DNA from: Paragordius varius
Taxonomy: Eukaryota; Animalia; Nematomorpha
NCBI GenBank assembly: GCA_964247055.1
Contig: OZ176056.1
Location: 3,968,001 to 4,032,000, forward strand
Reading direction: 5' to 3'
Length of the DNA: 64,000 bases
Within the stretch, counting starts at the first letter, position 1, and each line of letters starts with the position of its first letter. Position numbers and translations under genes: made by a program. The notes below the pieces were generated by a model. It searched no databases. It saw only the letters and a list, made by a program, of their open reading frames with translations, and was not told where the DNA came from. Positions 3,603 through 29,600 of the stretch are shown here, piece by piece.

Positions 3603-5471
3603 CTAGCTGGCCCTGTCACGCTTAGCTGTGACGTATCACCGATAATTAATTTTTAATAATTTGCAATAAATAGAGGTAATGAAGAAAAAAAAATAATAAT
3701 ATTAAAAAAAAATGTCTTTATTATTCTTTTACGGGTTTATGCATAGGCTCAAATATTGTTTAATCGAAATTGACCACATTTAAACTGTCCCTAATTAAAT
3801 TTAATTAACTATCATTGGATTTTATTTAAGACTTTCGTTTTACGAAATCATGGTAAAAAGTTTTATTTTGAAATTGTCTTCACACAGCTGGGATCAAGGG
3901 ATATAAAAAGTAAATCATTTGTGGTCCCTTTTTAAAGGAAAGAATGATATAATACATTCCCCAAAAATGTGTTTAACTGAATTCGTATTGCTTCTTAAGT
4001 TTTTTTAAAATTCTCCAAATTCACGCCATTTTTGTATGGCGTCTCAGTTTTAATCAGTAGACCTCTACCCATAGATGTATATGGAAAAAGCGCTAAGTTA
4101 AATTCTTTGCCTTTATAGGGCAAATATTTGGAATCATCTTTGATATCATCGGCTCATTGGTGATTCGAAAAAAAGATTTCAACACTGAATAATTAAATAG
4201 CGCTAGGGCTAACGGCTAAAAAAACGCCTGATTTTTTTTACCTAGTAAAGGGTAATATTCCAAGCTTTTAATGAGTTCATATGGCTTCATAATGTAAATT
4301 ATTTCCAAAACAACGCAATTTCTATATAGTGGCACAGTTTTTGTCGGGTAGCTCCATACTCAGGGGCAGATAAAAAAACCGTTGGGCAAAAATTTTGCCT
4401 TTATATGGGGAATACTGGAATTATTATGGATTCCATATGTTCCTATTAAACTCATAAGTTTTCGAAATTCGGCTCCAAAGGCATGCTGTATCGATTGTGG
4501 TGACTTTACGCGGGTAGCCCCCTAACCAGGGGCGACAAAAAAACGCTCAATTAAAATTTTTGTAGGGTAATACCTGGAATCATGATTGATTCCATGTGCT
4601 CTAATGGAATTTGCGAAAATTATCTCAAAAACAAAAAGTCTTTTTATGGTGGCGCATTTTTCAGGGCAAGGGTTTAATTAACAACTAATTTTAAAAAACG
4701 GATCTACTTGAATTTTTGCCTTTTTACGGGTAATATTTCAAACCCTTATTGAACTTATGTGGCCCACATTAGTTTTTGGAAAAATTGATCAACTAAAGAA
4801 TCATTCTAGGGTGACGCATTTTTGGGCGTGAAGGGCATAATTAACGGCTAATTTTAAAAACCGTATGTCCTAAACTTGTTACGGGTAATATTTTAACTAC
4901 CTATTTAACTAATATAACCTGATAGATTTTTTGAAATTTAGCCCCAAAGGCACACTATTTCGATATGATGGGGTAGTTTTTAGCGGATAACTCCTTCCCC
5001 AGCAGCCAATATAAAAACGCAACATTAAAATTTTTTCCTTTTAACAGGGAATATCTGGAATCCTCATTAAATTTTTACAGTCTCCTACCCTGGGCGAAAA
5101 ATAGATTCAAAAAACTATTTTTGTGGACTGTTTTTATAAAAAAATGGCCATTTAACGGGCTGGTAAAAAAGGGCCCAAAATAAAAAAGCGAGCCGTATGT
5201 TCGGCACAATCGAAAATAAATAAAAAAATCATATTTGAAATCGAATGGATTTCCGGAAAATTGTCTCAAAGACATGATTTTTGTGAACATGTCAAAAAAC
5301 CCGTTTTTTACACGGGGTGGGCCAGAACTGGGGGCCTTATTCAAAAAAGGGCGAATATATTGTCGCATTTATTAATAATTATATTTTTTCAACATTTGGA
5401 TTTGAATGGGTCTACCGGTTTTCCGGAAACAGATCACAAAGCCACCACTTTCTATATTTATAAATATACAG
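3603..5471 (-). mobile_element. Non-autonomous Helitron-like element A with internal ~157-bp tandem array
   Basis: On the minus strand the 3' end is a hairpin (GTCAC 3615-3619 / GTGAC 3628-3632) followed by CTAG|T at 3603. Array anchors (GGG-AATA motif) at 4118, 4250, 4407, 4565, 4728, 4883, 5047. The 5200-5470 segment is shared with the copies at 45.6-45.9 kb and 56.0-56.2 kb. Confidence 0.55.
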
Positions 5472-6032
5472 TTATTGTTTCAATCGTGTTTTGGAACCAT
5501 CCAAATTTTGGACTCTTGAAATCAGAAAATTGTAATAAATACTAGTTTTTGCATCTAAACAGGCAAGGTTTAATTAAATTTTAACCAAAACAACTTTAAC
5601 AAATGTTTTACAAGTATTAGCTCTAAAACCCCCAAAATGTAAACAAAAAATCAAGAGGTAATAAAGCTTTAATGAAAAAAACATTTTTAATTTTTCCATT
5701 TCAGACATGTTAGCTAAAAAAATAATAAAAACAAAGCACTTTGAACAACTAAAAATAATAATTAAATAAATATTTCTCTTTTCAAAACGCCCAAATACAA
5801 AATTTTGTCTAATAAATTTATTTTCCGAATCCAATTGTGCATTTTAGCCGCTTTAATGAATGAACGTAGAAGTTTAAAAAGATTATAAATTATCTTAGAT
5901 AAATATTAAGTAAATCAGCTGACTGCTATAATCAGTTTTATTTATTTTCCTATATGTGATGTGGCCCCAAAGTTTTAGATAGTAAAAGTTAGAGTTTTTC
6001 TAAAAACATAATATATATATATATATATATAT

Positions 6033-7350: not shown

Positions 7351-7691
7351 ATTCTTTGTTCTTAAATGTCGTCCAAAATATTTTTGTTTACACTATTTTT
7401 TAAAATAACGTCTTTTAGCCCAATTTATTTAAAAATGTCTACAATAAATATGTCCCATCGGAATAGGGACAAGGAGGTAGAGAAGTCCTAGGGAGGTTAT
7501 CATTGGGCATAAGCAACAAAAAAGCATTTTTTTTCTAAAAAAAGTAATTAAAAAATGTACCACTGATATTAATATGTATTAAATTTTAACCGTATACTAG
7601 AATTAGTTTATATAGCATTGGGTGACTTTGGTTATTCTTGCCCATATAAAAATATGTTGAATTGGCAAAAGATATCAATTTAAATATTTAT

Positions 7692-8306
7692 TCAGGTATA
7701 AATTTTTTCTAATAATGTTCCATGTATACTTAAGTGAGAATGCTCTCGATATTCTATATAATTGGGTTTAAATAAAATTTTATCTCCGGTGCTAAGATCA
7801 TTTTGGTTGTAAACATGCACATTTTCAAATTTTATGCGTTTCACTGATTCATCTATTTTTGAGTCATTTTGACTGACAAAAATTTTAATTAGAGGATTCT
7901 CGGAATGACAAATAATGGAATTATTTTTTGAATCTACACTTTGAACCTTTCCACTCATGCTCAAATCTAATTATTAGTTTGATATTATACCAGAAGATGG
8001 GATATCATAGAATATTCTATCATATTTTACTATAAAATAAAAATTATTGAAGTCTGAAAATAGTTTTGATGATGTATGAATTTTTATGTTTCCTATGGCA
8101 AGAGTGATCGAACCATTTGTAAAAGTTTTGGTAAACTTATCATCCAAGCCTTCATGCTTTTTAAGCAAATCAATAATTTTAGAATTGAAAAAAAGTTTTA
8201 TGTTCCGTTTTGGGAGATAATTAAATGGGAGAGAAAGATTTAAAATCCGGGATTCTTTGGTAAAATTATCAAGGCGTAAAAGGCCATGTGCTTCTTTAAA
8301 CCTCAT
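7692..8306 (-). CDS. POLR1F: RNA polymerase I subunit RPA43-like (Rpb7/RPA43 family, N-terminal RNP-like domain plus OB fold); exons 8306-7991 and 7966-7692
   Basis: LNLSLPFNYL..LAIGNIKI..DRIFYDIP resembles RPA43 HIALSPRYL..IAYDNIKV..DFVIFCP. GDKILFK..LSIHGTLL resembles GDELEFEV..FCIRGKL. The two track ORFs are in the same frame and are joined by removing a 24-nt GT-AG segment (7990-7967). Confidence 0.65.
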
Positions 8307-9834: not shown

Positions 9835-11380
9835 TTATATATAATTGCATTCCAAGGACGTTACAGGTCTTTTGCACGAGAAAGTGTCGTAATATGGTGC
9901 AAAGTTTTGTAAAGCCAAATTAGATCTATAATCACACAAAAAACATGTATAAATTATATATATAGAATTACGAGCACTATTATCCATATCTGTATTTCTA
10001 AAATGGAATTTAATTTACATGTGCCATGTATGTATGAAATTTTTCGTTGTATATGTTACACGTTTAACACTTCGATTCAAATTGGGGTATCTAAATACCC
10101 CAGACTAAGTTTTAATTGAATTTTTTAAAAAACTACTGAAGGAAACGGTCCCAATTTAAATTTATGCTTCTATCCTGATAAATATTATATAAATATACCA
10201 AAATATCTTGATAAAATTTTGTTTTGAAAAAAAAGTTCCACCTCAAACTACTTCGACGCCATTTTAATTTTACAAAAATTTTGCAAAATATCGTCTTCAT
10301 TTAATTTTAAGGGTAAAACTAAAGCTTATTTTCATATAAATTACATCTAACATTGATAGAAATAGAAAAAGCGGTTTATTTTGTATTATTTTTTAATTTT
10401 ACAATTTGACACATGTCACGTTGACTAAATTTTTACCTTTCAGTTTTAGCTCAAAATAAGTAATATGAATATTTTTGAATAAAATTTTTTATATATTTCG
10501 GTTTATTAATGTTATATAAGTGCAAAATTTTGCCATGGTTTCGATTGCCTCCATACTTTTTAAACTATTTGATTTTAAACAGGCCTGGGGTATCCAACTA
10601 CCCCAATTTGAATCGAAGGACTAAAATGAGTGTATTGTATCCAAGTGTTAATTAAACACTGTATTTTTTTCCTTATATTTTCATAAATGTAACTAATTTA
10701 ATGAAAAATCTTATAACGTGTAAAGTTAACACATTTTAGCCACTTAAAATACAGAAGTGGTGTATAACAGTTTTCGTTACTTATATAAACGATTATGCAA
10801 CTACTTATATAATTTTTTTGGAAAGTCAATATTCAATAGGGTGTTTTACAAAATAAATTAATGTTAAACCTGACTGCGAAAGACAAGTGAGTGCCAATAT
10901 TCATTAGATCTTGGAAATAGGGTTTTGTTTGTGAGCATGTATACTATCGATAAGAAATATATTTATAACAAACATTATCATAAGATGTATTGAGTCAAAA
11001 ATGAATTAGACAGACAATGCGTAAAAAACATTAAAAACAAATATTTTTTAAAAAGACAAACTACTTTTTTAAATTTTAACTCTTTTAACTAAGGATTTTC
11101 ACATAATAAGAGGTTTAAATTGCTAATATAAATCAATTATATTTTACAATTGTAATTTTATGTGGGGAACATTACGGTTAAAAAAAGATGGTTTTCTTTA
11201 TAAATTAAATATTTGTCTTTTAAGTTTTTACACTTTGTCCGCATAATTCGATGTTTTACACTGTATATCAATATATACCCGTGAATATTCCAATAAAAAT
11301 TGGCGATTTATGTTGTACAAGTCCTGTTTTTTGTATTGGATGGTTTTCAACATAGCCTACACAAATTTAGGAAAATAATT

Positions 11381-26635: not shown

Positions 26636-29600
26636 TTATAAGATTTTTCGGCGAGGCTTTATAGTTTCCGATATATTCCAAAGCTCATCATCAGCCAAAT
26701 GGTATTGAAAATTATCAAATATTGATATTATTTGTTCATCTTGTTTAATTTTATATGTTCTAAAAAAATTGGAAAAACAATATATAATAAAACTTGAAGT
26801 TATAAAGTTAAATTTCCAAAAGAGAACCATACTTTTTTTATTAATCTAAATTTTCTTATATAAATTATTTAATTACAAAAATAAATAATTGATTGCCAAT
26901 ATACAACAGTTTTCAATTTAAAACAAAGAGTTATTATTGAAAAAAATAAGTTTAATAAGTACAGCGGTCTCTTAAAATAATTTTTTAATCATTCCATCAT
27001 GTATTGTTCATATTATTTAAATTTTTACCGTTATAATTATAATAAAAAACAAAAAATATAGTTTTTTGATTGAAAAAAAAATAGTTTTTACTTATTTTTG
27101 AAACGCTTCAAACTATGGAGTACGGAAAAAATTTGCCAGCATTTTACGAAATTGATAAGACCGTCCGGAGTGTACGTTGGATTTCCAACATCAATGAAGG
27201 TTAAATCTTGCAAAATTAATCCTCTATAATAAAACAAATATGATTAGATAATTTAAATAAATTATTTTTCATTATTTTTTGAATCAAAAAGACGAATGAA
27301 TAATGCTATAACATACTATACACAAAGATAAGCTATATAATTTGGTAAACACCCACCCTGTTGATAGAGATTATTATTATAACAGTTATAGTAAAAAGTA
27401 ATTATTTGTTAAAATTTCAGTCGATGTTTCAAATAAGCGAAGTGATTGTGTATTCAATTTTATCTAATGATTTTAGTCCAACTAAAATTTGTTATACCCT
27501 ACAAAACTCGATGCAAAAGAGATCAAAAAAAGAAAAGATTATATCATACACATAAGGTATGCAAGGTGGGACAATTTCTGCCAATGTTTTTCGATAATTT
27601 TTGAAGGAACCCGAGCTATCCACCAACTCCCGTAAGGTTTGAAGTAAAGTCATTTCTTTATCCGTTAATTTGATTAAATTTAACATTGGAGCTGCTGGCA
27701 TTTGGGAAATTTTTTCATCTTTATTCCTGGTAGGATTTATAAATGCATTGCTATTAGTAGAGATTGCAGATGAATTTGTTGTAAAATTATCCCTCATAAA
27801 ATTTTGTGGTGTCCCAAATGATTTACGAGCAATCAAATTTGATTTGGGACTCATCACCAGTATTTCTATAAATATTATAATAAAAAAAGTAGTTGGGTCA
27901 GTATTATCGGGGTAATTGGATAAAACATGCTTTTATACATAAAGTTTTATAAAGATTTTACAAGAAAACTGGATCGCACACTTTTTCTTAAAATGCCAAG
28001 TTTAAAATCAAGAAAAATTATTATTAACATTGTTGTTTGGCGTGTAAAACAGATAAAAATTATGTAAAAACCAGCTTTTAAAAAAATAGACTAAATTTCA
28101 ATTTTATACCACTAGATGGAGATTTAGGCCTTCGGCCACGGCTAAGAGATCGTTTTCGCTGTTTGGAAGCAAAGAATGGAGATGTTTCCATTTTTGATTT
28201 ATTCCTGGACAGCAAGTTATCGGATAGCCTTCTCTGATAATTCATTCCATGATCCATAGCGGCATCACTTTTATTTGCGTTGTTGTAAGAAACTCGTTGT
28301 GATAAATTATTGTTATTTAATCTTTTGTCAAATACCCCTTGATTCCGGTTTTTATCGGGACAACAATATTTTTTGCAAGGTGAATTGCATGGGGATGGCG
28401 TAACTTTGCTATTTGAATTATCCTCCAATAACCTTGAAATGGGTGAGCTATCAAGTGCTGATAATAGGGCTAGCAGGGCATTAAAATTGTAGTATTCGTA
28501 TCGAAGGTGGCGCATAACCTTAAGGAATTTGCGATAAACCTTTAACCTAAGACCCGATATAAACTCTTGTGTAATTTGATTATTGGCATCGTCAGTATTG
28601 GTTAGATTAGGCGTAGTATTGCAAAGTGAATTAGTTAAATTATTTATATGATTGAAATTGTGTTGTGAGTCTTTTGAATTCTTTCGTCGTTTAATACCAA
28701 TCGGTGGTGCCAAAATCATAGTTCTACACCTATGTATAGATAAGAAAATTTAAATAATACAGACAAAAAGTAAAAATATAAAGACAATTTTTTTTTTTAA
28801 AAAACAATCATACTTTTTGAACCTGCTTTTTCTTTTATATAAATTAATTGATTACAATTTTAAATTTTTTTATTTTATTGGGCCAATTTAAATCTCTATT
28901 ACATACATTGCAATAAACAATGAGTAAAAAATAAATATAGTTTAAAAAGACACAAAGGTCTTTTCAAAAAATCTTTAAATTTATGCTACGTTTCATTGGT
29001 ATAATTTCAATTTTTTACTGTATAGATATGAATTTTAAAGTATCAATCTCGTAATACCAATATGAAACATCATTGAAATGTTTGGTGAAAGTTGAGAGGT
29101 TAGGTGTTAAGGTTTCGTTTCGTTTAAGAGCCCAAATCAAACATTCATTCATACTTAGGCGACAAAATAATTGTGCGTCCAAAAAGGTTAATTGTTCGGC
29201 AATATCGCGACTTTTGGCATTCAAGAACAGTTCAGTAAAATCTAGTTTTACGTGATTATATATAAATATTTTTTTTGATCAAAATTAGTTGACAAAAATG
29301 CAATGATTTATGAAATGGTGATACCTAAAATCTGAAATATACATTAAAAATGGAATTTATACGAACAAAACATAAAAATATAAAGATATATGTTTTTTTC
29401 CAAAAGTAAATCTAACTTTTTTAAACTCCATTTTTCAAATATAACTCATCGTTTGAAATGGCAAAAGTGTGTAATTGAGATGTATATTAGTAAGACAATA
29501 CATTCTATAAAATACAATTATACTTAAGTAGCTTATATAGGAAAATTAAAGTGTAGTTGTCTTTTAGAAAATATTTGTCTTTATATTTGTACGTTTTGTC

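Follow-up and report, generated by a model that had tools for sequence, protein, structure and literature searches.

The question raised by this locus is whether 24 nucleotides that interrupt a long open frame on the minus strand of the window (the whole 64,000-nt stretch of DNA that was analyzed) are a spliceosomal intron far shorter than those expected of an animal, or whether their resemblance to one has another explanation. The stretch, GTATAATATCAAACTAATAATTAG, was read directly at window positions 7967-7990 (minus strand); it is 83% A+T, and the GC content of the window is about 27%. Upstream of it lies exon 1 (7991-8306, minus strand), which begins with an ATG at 8306-8304 and comprises 316 nt, that is, 105 codons and the first base of codon 106. 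The exon 1 frame extends over 109 open codons, with a stop in the same frame four codons upstream of the ATG. On the other side, exon 2 (7692-7966, minus strand) supplies the last two bases of codon 106 and a further 90 codons before a TGA stop at 7692-7694. An AATAAA hexamer at 7687-7692 (minus strand), also read directly, overlaps this stop (TGAATAAA) and is likely to serve as the polyadenylation signal. The 24 nt themselves start with GT (7990-7989), as part of the hexamer GTATAA, and finish with AG (7968-7967), as part of TTAG; excised, they would constitute a GT-AG mini-intron in phase 1. Read through, the frame spanning them is GGT ATA ATA TCA AAC TAA TAA TTA GAT, with two consecutive in-frame TAA codons read directly at 7971-7976 (minus strand). 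The pentamer CTAAT, read directly at 7973-7977 on the same strand, could provide the branch site, with the branch A 7 nt from the 3' splice site. In all these respects—the phase, the paired in-frame TAA codons, CTAAT and the GTATAA donor—our reading agrees with that of the first-pass annotation. GTATAA recurs in the window at 28109 and 26186, in both cases where an open frame ends, as a candidate donor. At window 27495-28749 (minus strand), portions of a RasGEF domain are recognizable in two open frames (Pfam E = 7e-7 and 4e-8), the upstream one of which ends at GTATAA.

Removal of the 24 nt joins the two frames into a single one of 196 codons that ends in TGA, and the local protein sequence becomes ...DIPSS-D-LSMSGKV..., in which a proline and a glycine enclose seven residues (P-x7-G). 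When the 24 nt are kept, the same proline and glycine are separated by 15 positions, two of which are stops, and translation ends after 110 residues. The annotation had set the 7-residue spacing of spliced P-SSDLSMS-G against 15 residues without splicing, and both counts were confirmed on the frame. No alternative in-frame GT/AG pair is present near 7967-7990, and the next two AG dinucleotides would give segments of 31 and 37 nt. With a length divisible by three, the stretch disrupts the frame solely through its two TAA codons, and this makes the decay of a pseudogene and the reassignment of stop codons the rivals that have to be excluded. Having weighed these and other alternatives, we take the stretch to be a genuine mini-intron in a gene that is real or was so until very recently, with a probability of roughly three in four, its splicing being predicted from features of the DNA.

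A repeat or assembly artefact at 7967-7990 is unlikely, since the 24-mer is unique in the genome assembly searched (110.6 Mb in 44 contigs) at up to two mismatches, exon 1 and exon 2 are each single copy in the genome, the depth of DNA contigs from the source species in the bin 7801-8000 resembles that in the neighboring bins, and no indel or joint falls at the candidate site among the DNA contig matches listed. A run labeled ‘Organism B’ (X5) is identical wherever it covers the stretch and thus provides no comparative signal. The surroundings of the gene are repetitive: two repeats of very high copy number flank it at window 5001-5600 and 10001-10800, inverted joints are numerous at 10062-10656, and the summed contig depth in DNA run X1 is about 1-4 million over the flanking repeats versus about 300-800 over the gene.

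A genome search for Rpb7-family genes recovered RPB7 (locus L005) and RPC25 (locus L006), both of which are interrupted by very short GT-AG segments. RPB7 has five such introns on the minus strand (L005:1705-1726, 1571-1594, 1384-1410, 1311-1332 and 930-953), which measure 22, 24, 27, 22 and 24 nt in that order. Two of these stretches are in frame and free of stops, and amount to insertions of 8 and 9 residues that are missing from PDB RPB7 and from four homologs. All five positions carry introns in the RPB7 locus of Gordionus (L028), where they measure about 41, 68, 68 and 168 nt and about 6.1 kb; Gordionus is the nearest relative found, with an RPB7 identity of 84% versus 73-77% for three other aligned animal RPB7s. 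The Lonchura RPB7 (P0002) was set aside, its high score being due solely to an internal duplication. RPC25 has three introns (L006:1579-1599, 1459-1481 and 1350-1371) of 21, 23 and 22 nt in that order, and when its exon pieces are aligned to solved RPC8 chains, they cover residues 1-38, 38-69 and 70 onward in unbroken succession. The donors of these eight homology-defined introns are GTAT in six, GTAA in one and GTTA in one, and the acceptors are TTTAG in seven and TTAAG in one; three of these introns also have TAAT at 6-10 nt before the acceptor. We regard it as confirmed, on the strength of these alignments, that a class of predicted 21-27-nt GT-AG introns exists in this genome in two conserved genes, as had been supposed when the first-pass annotation proposed a minimal-intron class from the candidate.

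The fifth RPB7 mini-intron, GTATGTTGCTATTTAAAATTTTAG (minus strand, contig C4), is 24 nt long with an in-frame TAG. It interrupts the coding sequence late, around codon 157 and close to the 3' end, and is preceded by an intron of about 220 nt. In a BRR2/SNRNP200-like gene on contig C7, ORF coordinates place the first intron (L011:6338-6409, minus strand) 45 nt downstream of the ATG and give it a length of about 72 nt, with about 380 and 300 nt for the two that follow; proximity to the start codon does not, then, always go with a tiny intron.

The candidate resembles the RPB7 and RPC25 mini-introns in its GT-AG ends, in a length within 21-27 nt, in its very high A+T content, and in splice sites of the forms GTA(T/A) and TT(T)AG (the candidate itself has the ends GTATAA...ATTAG); its removal restores one frame. 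Some of the verified introns are, like it, multiples of three with in-frame stops, and the second RPB7 intron is identical to it in both length (24 nt) and donor hexamer (GTATAA). The difference lies in how they are anchored: the introns of RPB7 and RPC25 are fixed by alignment to solved structures and the five RPB7 positions carry introns in Gordionus, whereas the candidate is recognized by its sequence properties and no homolog of its gene was found. With a small position-weight matrix derived from the eight verified mini-introns, each of which was left out in turn to obtain their range, the candidate scores 2.41 bits, as against -0.55 to 7.5 for the verified set. Segments with GT..AG ends and lengths of 21-27 nt number 6,077 in 280 kb, and 4.1% of these score at least as high as the candidate. 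When random in-frame positions were drawn in long ORFs (n = 5,352), 7.7% lay within at least one GT..AG segment of a length divisible by three, and at none of the 5,352 did such a segment score as high as the candidate. ORF-joining screens over the 280 kb are not usable for detecting the class, because GT-AG was no commoner in them than control dinucleotides. Genome-wide, the pattern GTAT-N(12-18)-TTTAG has 17,369 matches versus 16,683 with N(32-38), a 4% excess that is confounded by repeats.

These figures bear directly on the possibility of a pseudogene, in which a former 204-codon ORF would have acquired two adjacent nonsense codons between a GT and an AG that are there by accident. That the frame is broken solely by two TAA codons, the length being a multiple of three, is what such decay would leave behind, and there are disrupted transposon ORFs, such as that in L027, where a stop happens to be enclosed by a 24-nt GT..AG. 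However, two adjacent nonsense changes with none in the other 202 codons would be an improbable outcome of decay, the locus is single copy and is not a transposon, and the A+T content, GTATAA donor and TTAG acceptor resemble those of the verified introns. As the candidate scores within the range of the class and none of the random ORF positions has a score as high, an accidental GT..AG around a decayed ORF is unlikely, and we consider the pseudogene very improbable overall.

The second rival supposes that TAA is a sense codon or is read through, so that the 24 nt are translated as part of a 204-residue protein. It would accommodate the preserved frame of the 24-nt stretch and the fact that the gene ends in TGA, as does RPB7. 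Against it, not one TAA or TAG is found in 1,279 conserved codons, and glutamine occurs at an ordinary frequency in the exon translations; moreover, the TAA- or TAG-bearing stretches of RPB7 and RPC25 are missing from every homolog and are bounded by GT..AG. The proteasome domain (PF00227) speaks to the same point: 8 of its 25 exon-level matches in the genome contain in-frame stops, and because these are of all three kinds (TAA, TAG and TGA), they fit in-frame mini-introns and not a change in the genetic code. Translation of the 24 nt is, hence, exceedingly improbable. One 384-nt proteasome match, at C1:6948764-6949147, covers 120 profile positions and includes two TAA codons, a layout like that of the candidate.

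If the stretch is a mini-intron, the frames on either side of it should belong to a gene, and here a further alternative has to be weighed, namely that the two open frames are chance or decaying frames in AT-rich, repeat-flanked DNA and that the GT..AG between them is a coincidence. The homology and fold searches, which used exon 1 and exon 2 each by itself, provide this alternative with one of its main arguments: no homolog emerged in any database searched. In Pfam, at E-values up to 10, nothing matched either exon apart from a chance hit to MurD_N, and neither exon had a match above chance among PDB chains or any match in a word search of a collection of 5.8 billion protein clusters. HMMER, run with exon 1 against 1.84 billion representatives, returned one chance match to a repeat protein (P0001). 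The nearest named clusters in Atlas look-ups were cold-shock/S1-like at 0.79, a level that is often reached by chance, and an exact-sequence look-up of the 110-residue ORF gave no record. Likewise, none of the listed runs that contain the stretch is on record as RNA, and the runs guessed to be RNA (X6 and X7, which have the same species label) contain no contig over the gene. As negative evidence this counts for little; X6 does match another part of the stretch once, partially and over a short length.

Composition is also compatible with chance frames. The exons have a GC content of 28.5%, no higher than that of the flanks, and in a low-power codon log-odds model trained on the 1,279 conserved codons, exon 1 scores -0.16 and exon 2 -0.07 per codon, versus +0.19 ± 0.11 for conserved exons and -0.23 ± 0.08 for background-like sequence. 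On this scale, values of -0.04 to -0.13 were obtained for real genes that are less conserved, such as the RasGEF exons, a CHMP gene and a 264-codon ORF; this places the candidate near the background, toward the bottom of the range shown by real genes. The own frame of exon 1 scores no better than its other frames; exon 2 does prefer its own frame. Single-sequence AlphaFold models likewise separate the two halves: that of exon 1 has a pLDDT of 43, no better than expected for a random sequence, and that of exon 2 is all-beta with a pLDDT of 62. Searches with the exon 2 model, itself a poor one, by Foldseek and VIA-align gave no meaningful match.

Long frames as such are no rarity in this DNA: the two strands of 280 kb together contain 177 stop-free runs of 80-130 codons. 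The failure of GT-AG to exceed the control dinucleotides in the ORF-joining screens is likewise compatible with chance. However, we put the probability that a run of 105 codons or more adjoins by chance one of 90 or more at about 0.2-0.6% per run, and chance would in addition have to supply a class-like 24-nt GT..AG that removes exactly the stops, something seen at 0 of the 5,352 random positions. The case for a gene comes from two long frames joined only by a class-typical intron, a start at the first ATG of the frame, the AATAAA on the stop, and the frame preference and beta-rich model of exon 2. We therefore consider chance frames to be quite unlikely. The gene is a single-copy orphan with a weak codon bias and no detectable relatives.

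Under the preferred reading, that of a mini-intron in a real gene, window 7692-8306 (minus strand) would be a single-copy, two-exon gene for a 196-residue protein with a 24-nt, phase 1 spliceosomal GT-AG intron. The spliceosome would recognize GTATAA as the donor and TTAG as the acceptor, with the branch point supplied by an A of CTAAT some 7 nt before the 3' end of the intron. Retention of the intron would truncate the protein at residue 110 and probably expose the transcript to nonsense-mediated decay, in place of yielding a protein with 8 extra residues. The double TAA would be needed for this truncation because the length of the intron is a multiple of three. The candidate in fact combines the two features of a Paramecium-type safeguard, a length divisible by three and TAA TAA in frame. 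By analogy, its design may follow the logic that two Paramecium studies describe for introns of 25 nt, the average of the tiny introns there, in which in-frame stops in an intron divisible by three allow its retention to be caught (PMC8997360, PMC5014332). The likeness extends to the similar intron length.

Such a safeguard is not universal in this genome, as two RPB7 introns, of 24 and 27 nt, are in frame and stop-free. Among the five mini-introns with lengths divisible by three seen here, a small sample, three contain stops (the candidate, the 21-nt intron of RPC25 and the 24-nt intron at the 3' end of RPB7); the two that do not set this genome apart from Paramecium. These two (L005:1571-1594, 24 nt, and L005:1384-1410, 27 nt, both on the minus strand) would add 8 and 9 residues, respectively, on retention, without decay. 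Furthermore, in Paramecium nearly all introns are tiny and TAA and TAG encode glutamine, whereas the present genome uses the standard code and has, next to its tiny introns, others that range from 72 nt to at least 380 nt.

The animal spliceosome is believed to have steric difficulty with introns shorter than about 30 nt, and such introns have, to our knowledge, been published for very few animal groups. In the dicyemid Dicyema japonicum, introns average 38 bp (PMC6736024). The likeness to dicyemids is that of parasitic animals whose spliceosomes handle introns far below the usual animal minimum. Dicyemids, though, are spiralians with a reduced genome and a general shortening of introns, whereas the genome studied here is of ecdysozoan type, 110 Mb in size and repeat-rich, and only some of its introns are tiny. 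Published nematomorph assemblies are reported to be larger, at 200-300 Mb (10.1101/2024.06.11.598342), and the Gordionus genome has a GC content of 26.9% (10.1101/2023.06.26.546503). Neither of these two nematomorph genome preprints (10.1101/2023.06.26.546503 and 10.1101/2024.06.11.598342) mentions introns, and a full-text literature search on introns in nematomorph genomes returned nothing relevant among the papers listed (Cunha et al. 2023 lay outside its results).

We think it probable that an ecdysozoan animal, a nematomorph or a close relative of one, routinely splices GT-AG introns of 21-27 nt beside others of ordinary length. If so, the working minimum of the animal spliceosome would be well under 30 nt outside the dicyemids too, and a genome that mixes the two kinds of intron would be a natural system for studying the pairing of splice sites so close together. 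Genes of this kind would be broken or missed by gene finders that impose a minimum intron length, and this may inflate the gene losses reported for horsehair worms. The candidate, with 24 nt and a double in-frame stop, would be one instance, lying in a lineage-specific gene bound to escape standard gene finders. For the class as such, the candidate intron adds little beyond the better-anchored examples in RPB7 and RPC25, its gene being without relatives or RNA support.

A separate question is what the gene encodes. The first-pass annotation had labeled it RPA43-like and essential, a designation that found no support in Pfam, PDB, word searches, HMMER, hhalign, folding or fold searches. Exon 1 has no match to PF03876 (SHS2_Rpb7-N) at E-values up to 10, and a scan of the whole genome with this profile reported only RPB7, RPC25 and one weak, isolated ORF (L007), without finding the candidate locus. 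Exon 2 has no match to PF17875 (RPA43_OB), for which the best hit in the genome has E = 8 and lies at another locus. In local alignments, the shuffle z of the exons against RPB7 and RPC25 of the same genome is below 1, versus 12.7 for RPB7 against RPC25, and hhalign of the exons against the RPB7 profile gives a probability below 1%. The fold searches were blank, and no PDB chain of RPA43 was matched.

The one argument for an Rpb7-type protein is the linker. The spliced candidate reads IP-SSDLSMS-GKV, RPB7 reads MP-FKGEVLD-GVV and RPC25 reads SP-FIDEIIL-GKI, so that all three have the P-x7-G spacing, which is found in human RPC8 as well and which we take to be that of human RPA43. This match is weak, was noticed post hoc and is not specific to RPA43. 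An RPA43 (POLR1F) ortholog too diverged for sequence tools would share with the candidate a small, single-copy protein with this spacing (P-x7-G-K-V in the candidate), and possibly an alpha/beta half followed by an all-beta half: the secondary structure predicted at low confidence (a strand, a helix, strands and then an all-beta half) would fit an SHS2 and an OB domain. On the other side stands the fact that no tool detected in the candidate the defining domain or any sequence similarity. In addition, human and yeast RPA43 have about 330 residues and a charged tail, whereas the candidate has 196 residues and lacks one. In our assessment, orthology with RPA43 is unlikely.

The annotation had also called for a check for another intact RPA43 locus, and the genome searches with PF03876 and PF17875 found none; the absence of any other RPA43 candidate is itself a point in favor of the label. 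L007 was considered for that role and rejected, being merely an isolated ORF of 52 codons with E = 0.4. Two further loci, L003 (C4:1566511-1569579) and L004 (C5:11981359-11984427), have only chance matches to RPA43_OB. An identical 35-nt stretch occurs in both at the same position in the locus, beside an open frame of 383 codons, and their open frames include ones of 599 and 999 residues, which suggests that they are copies of one putative transposable element on two contigs.
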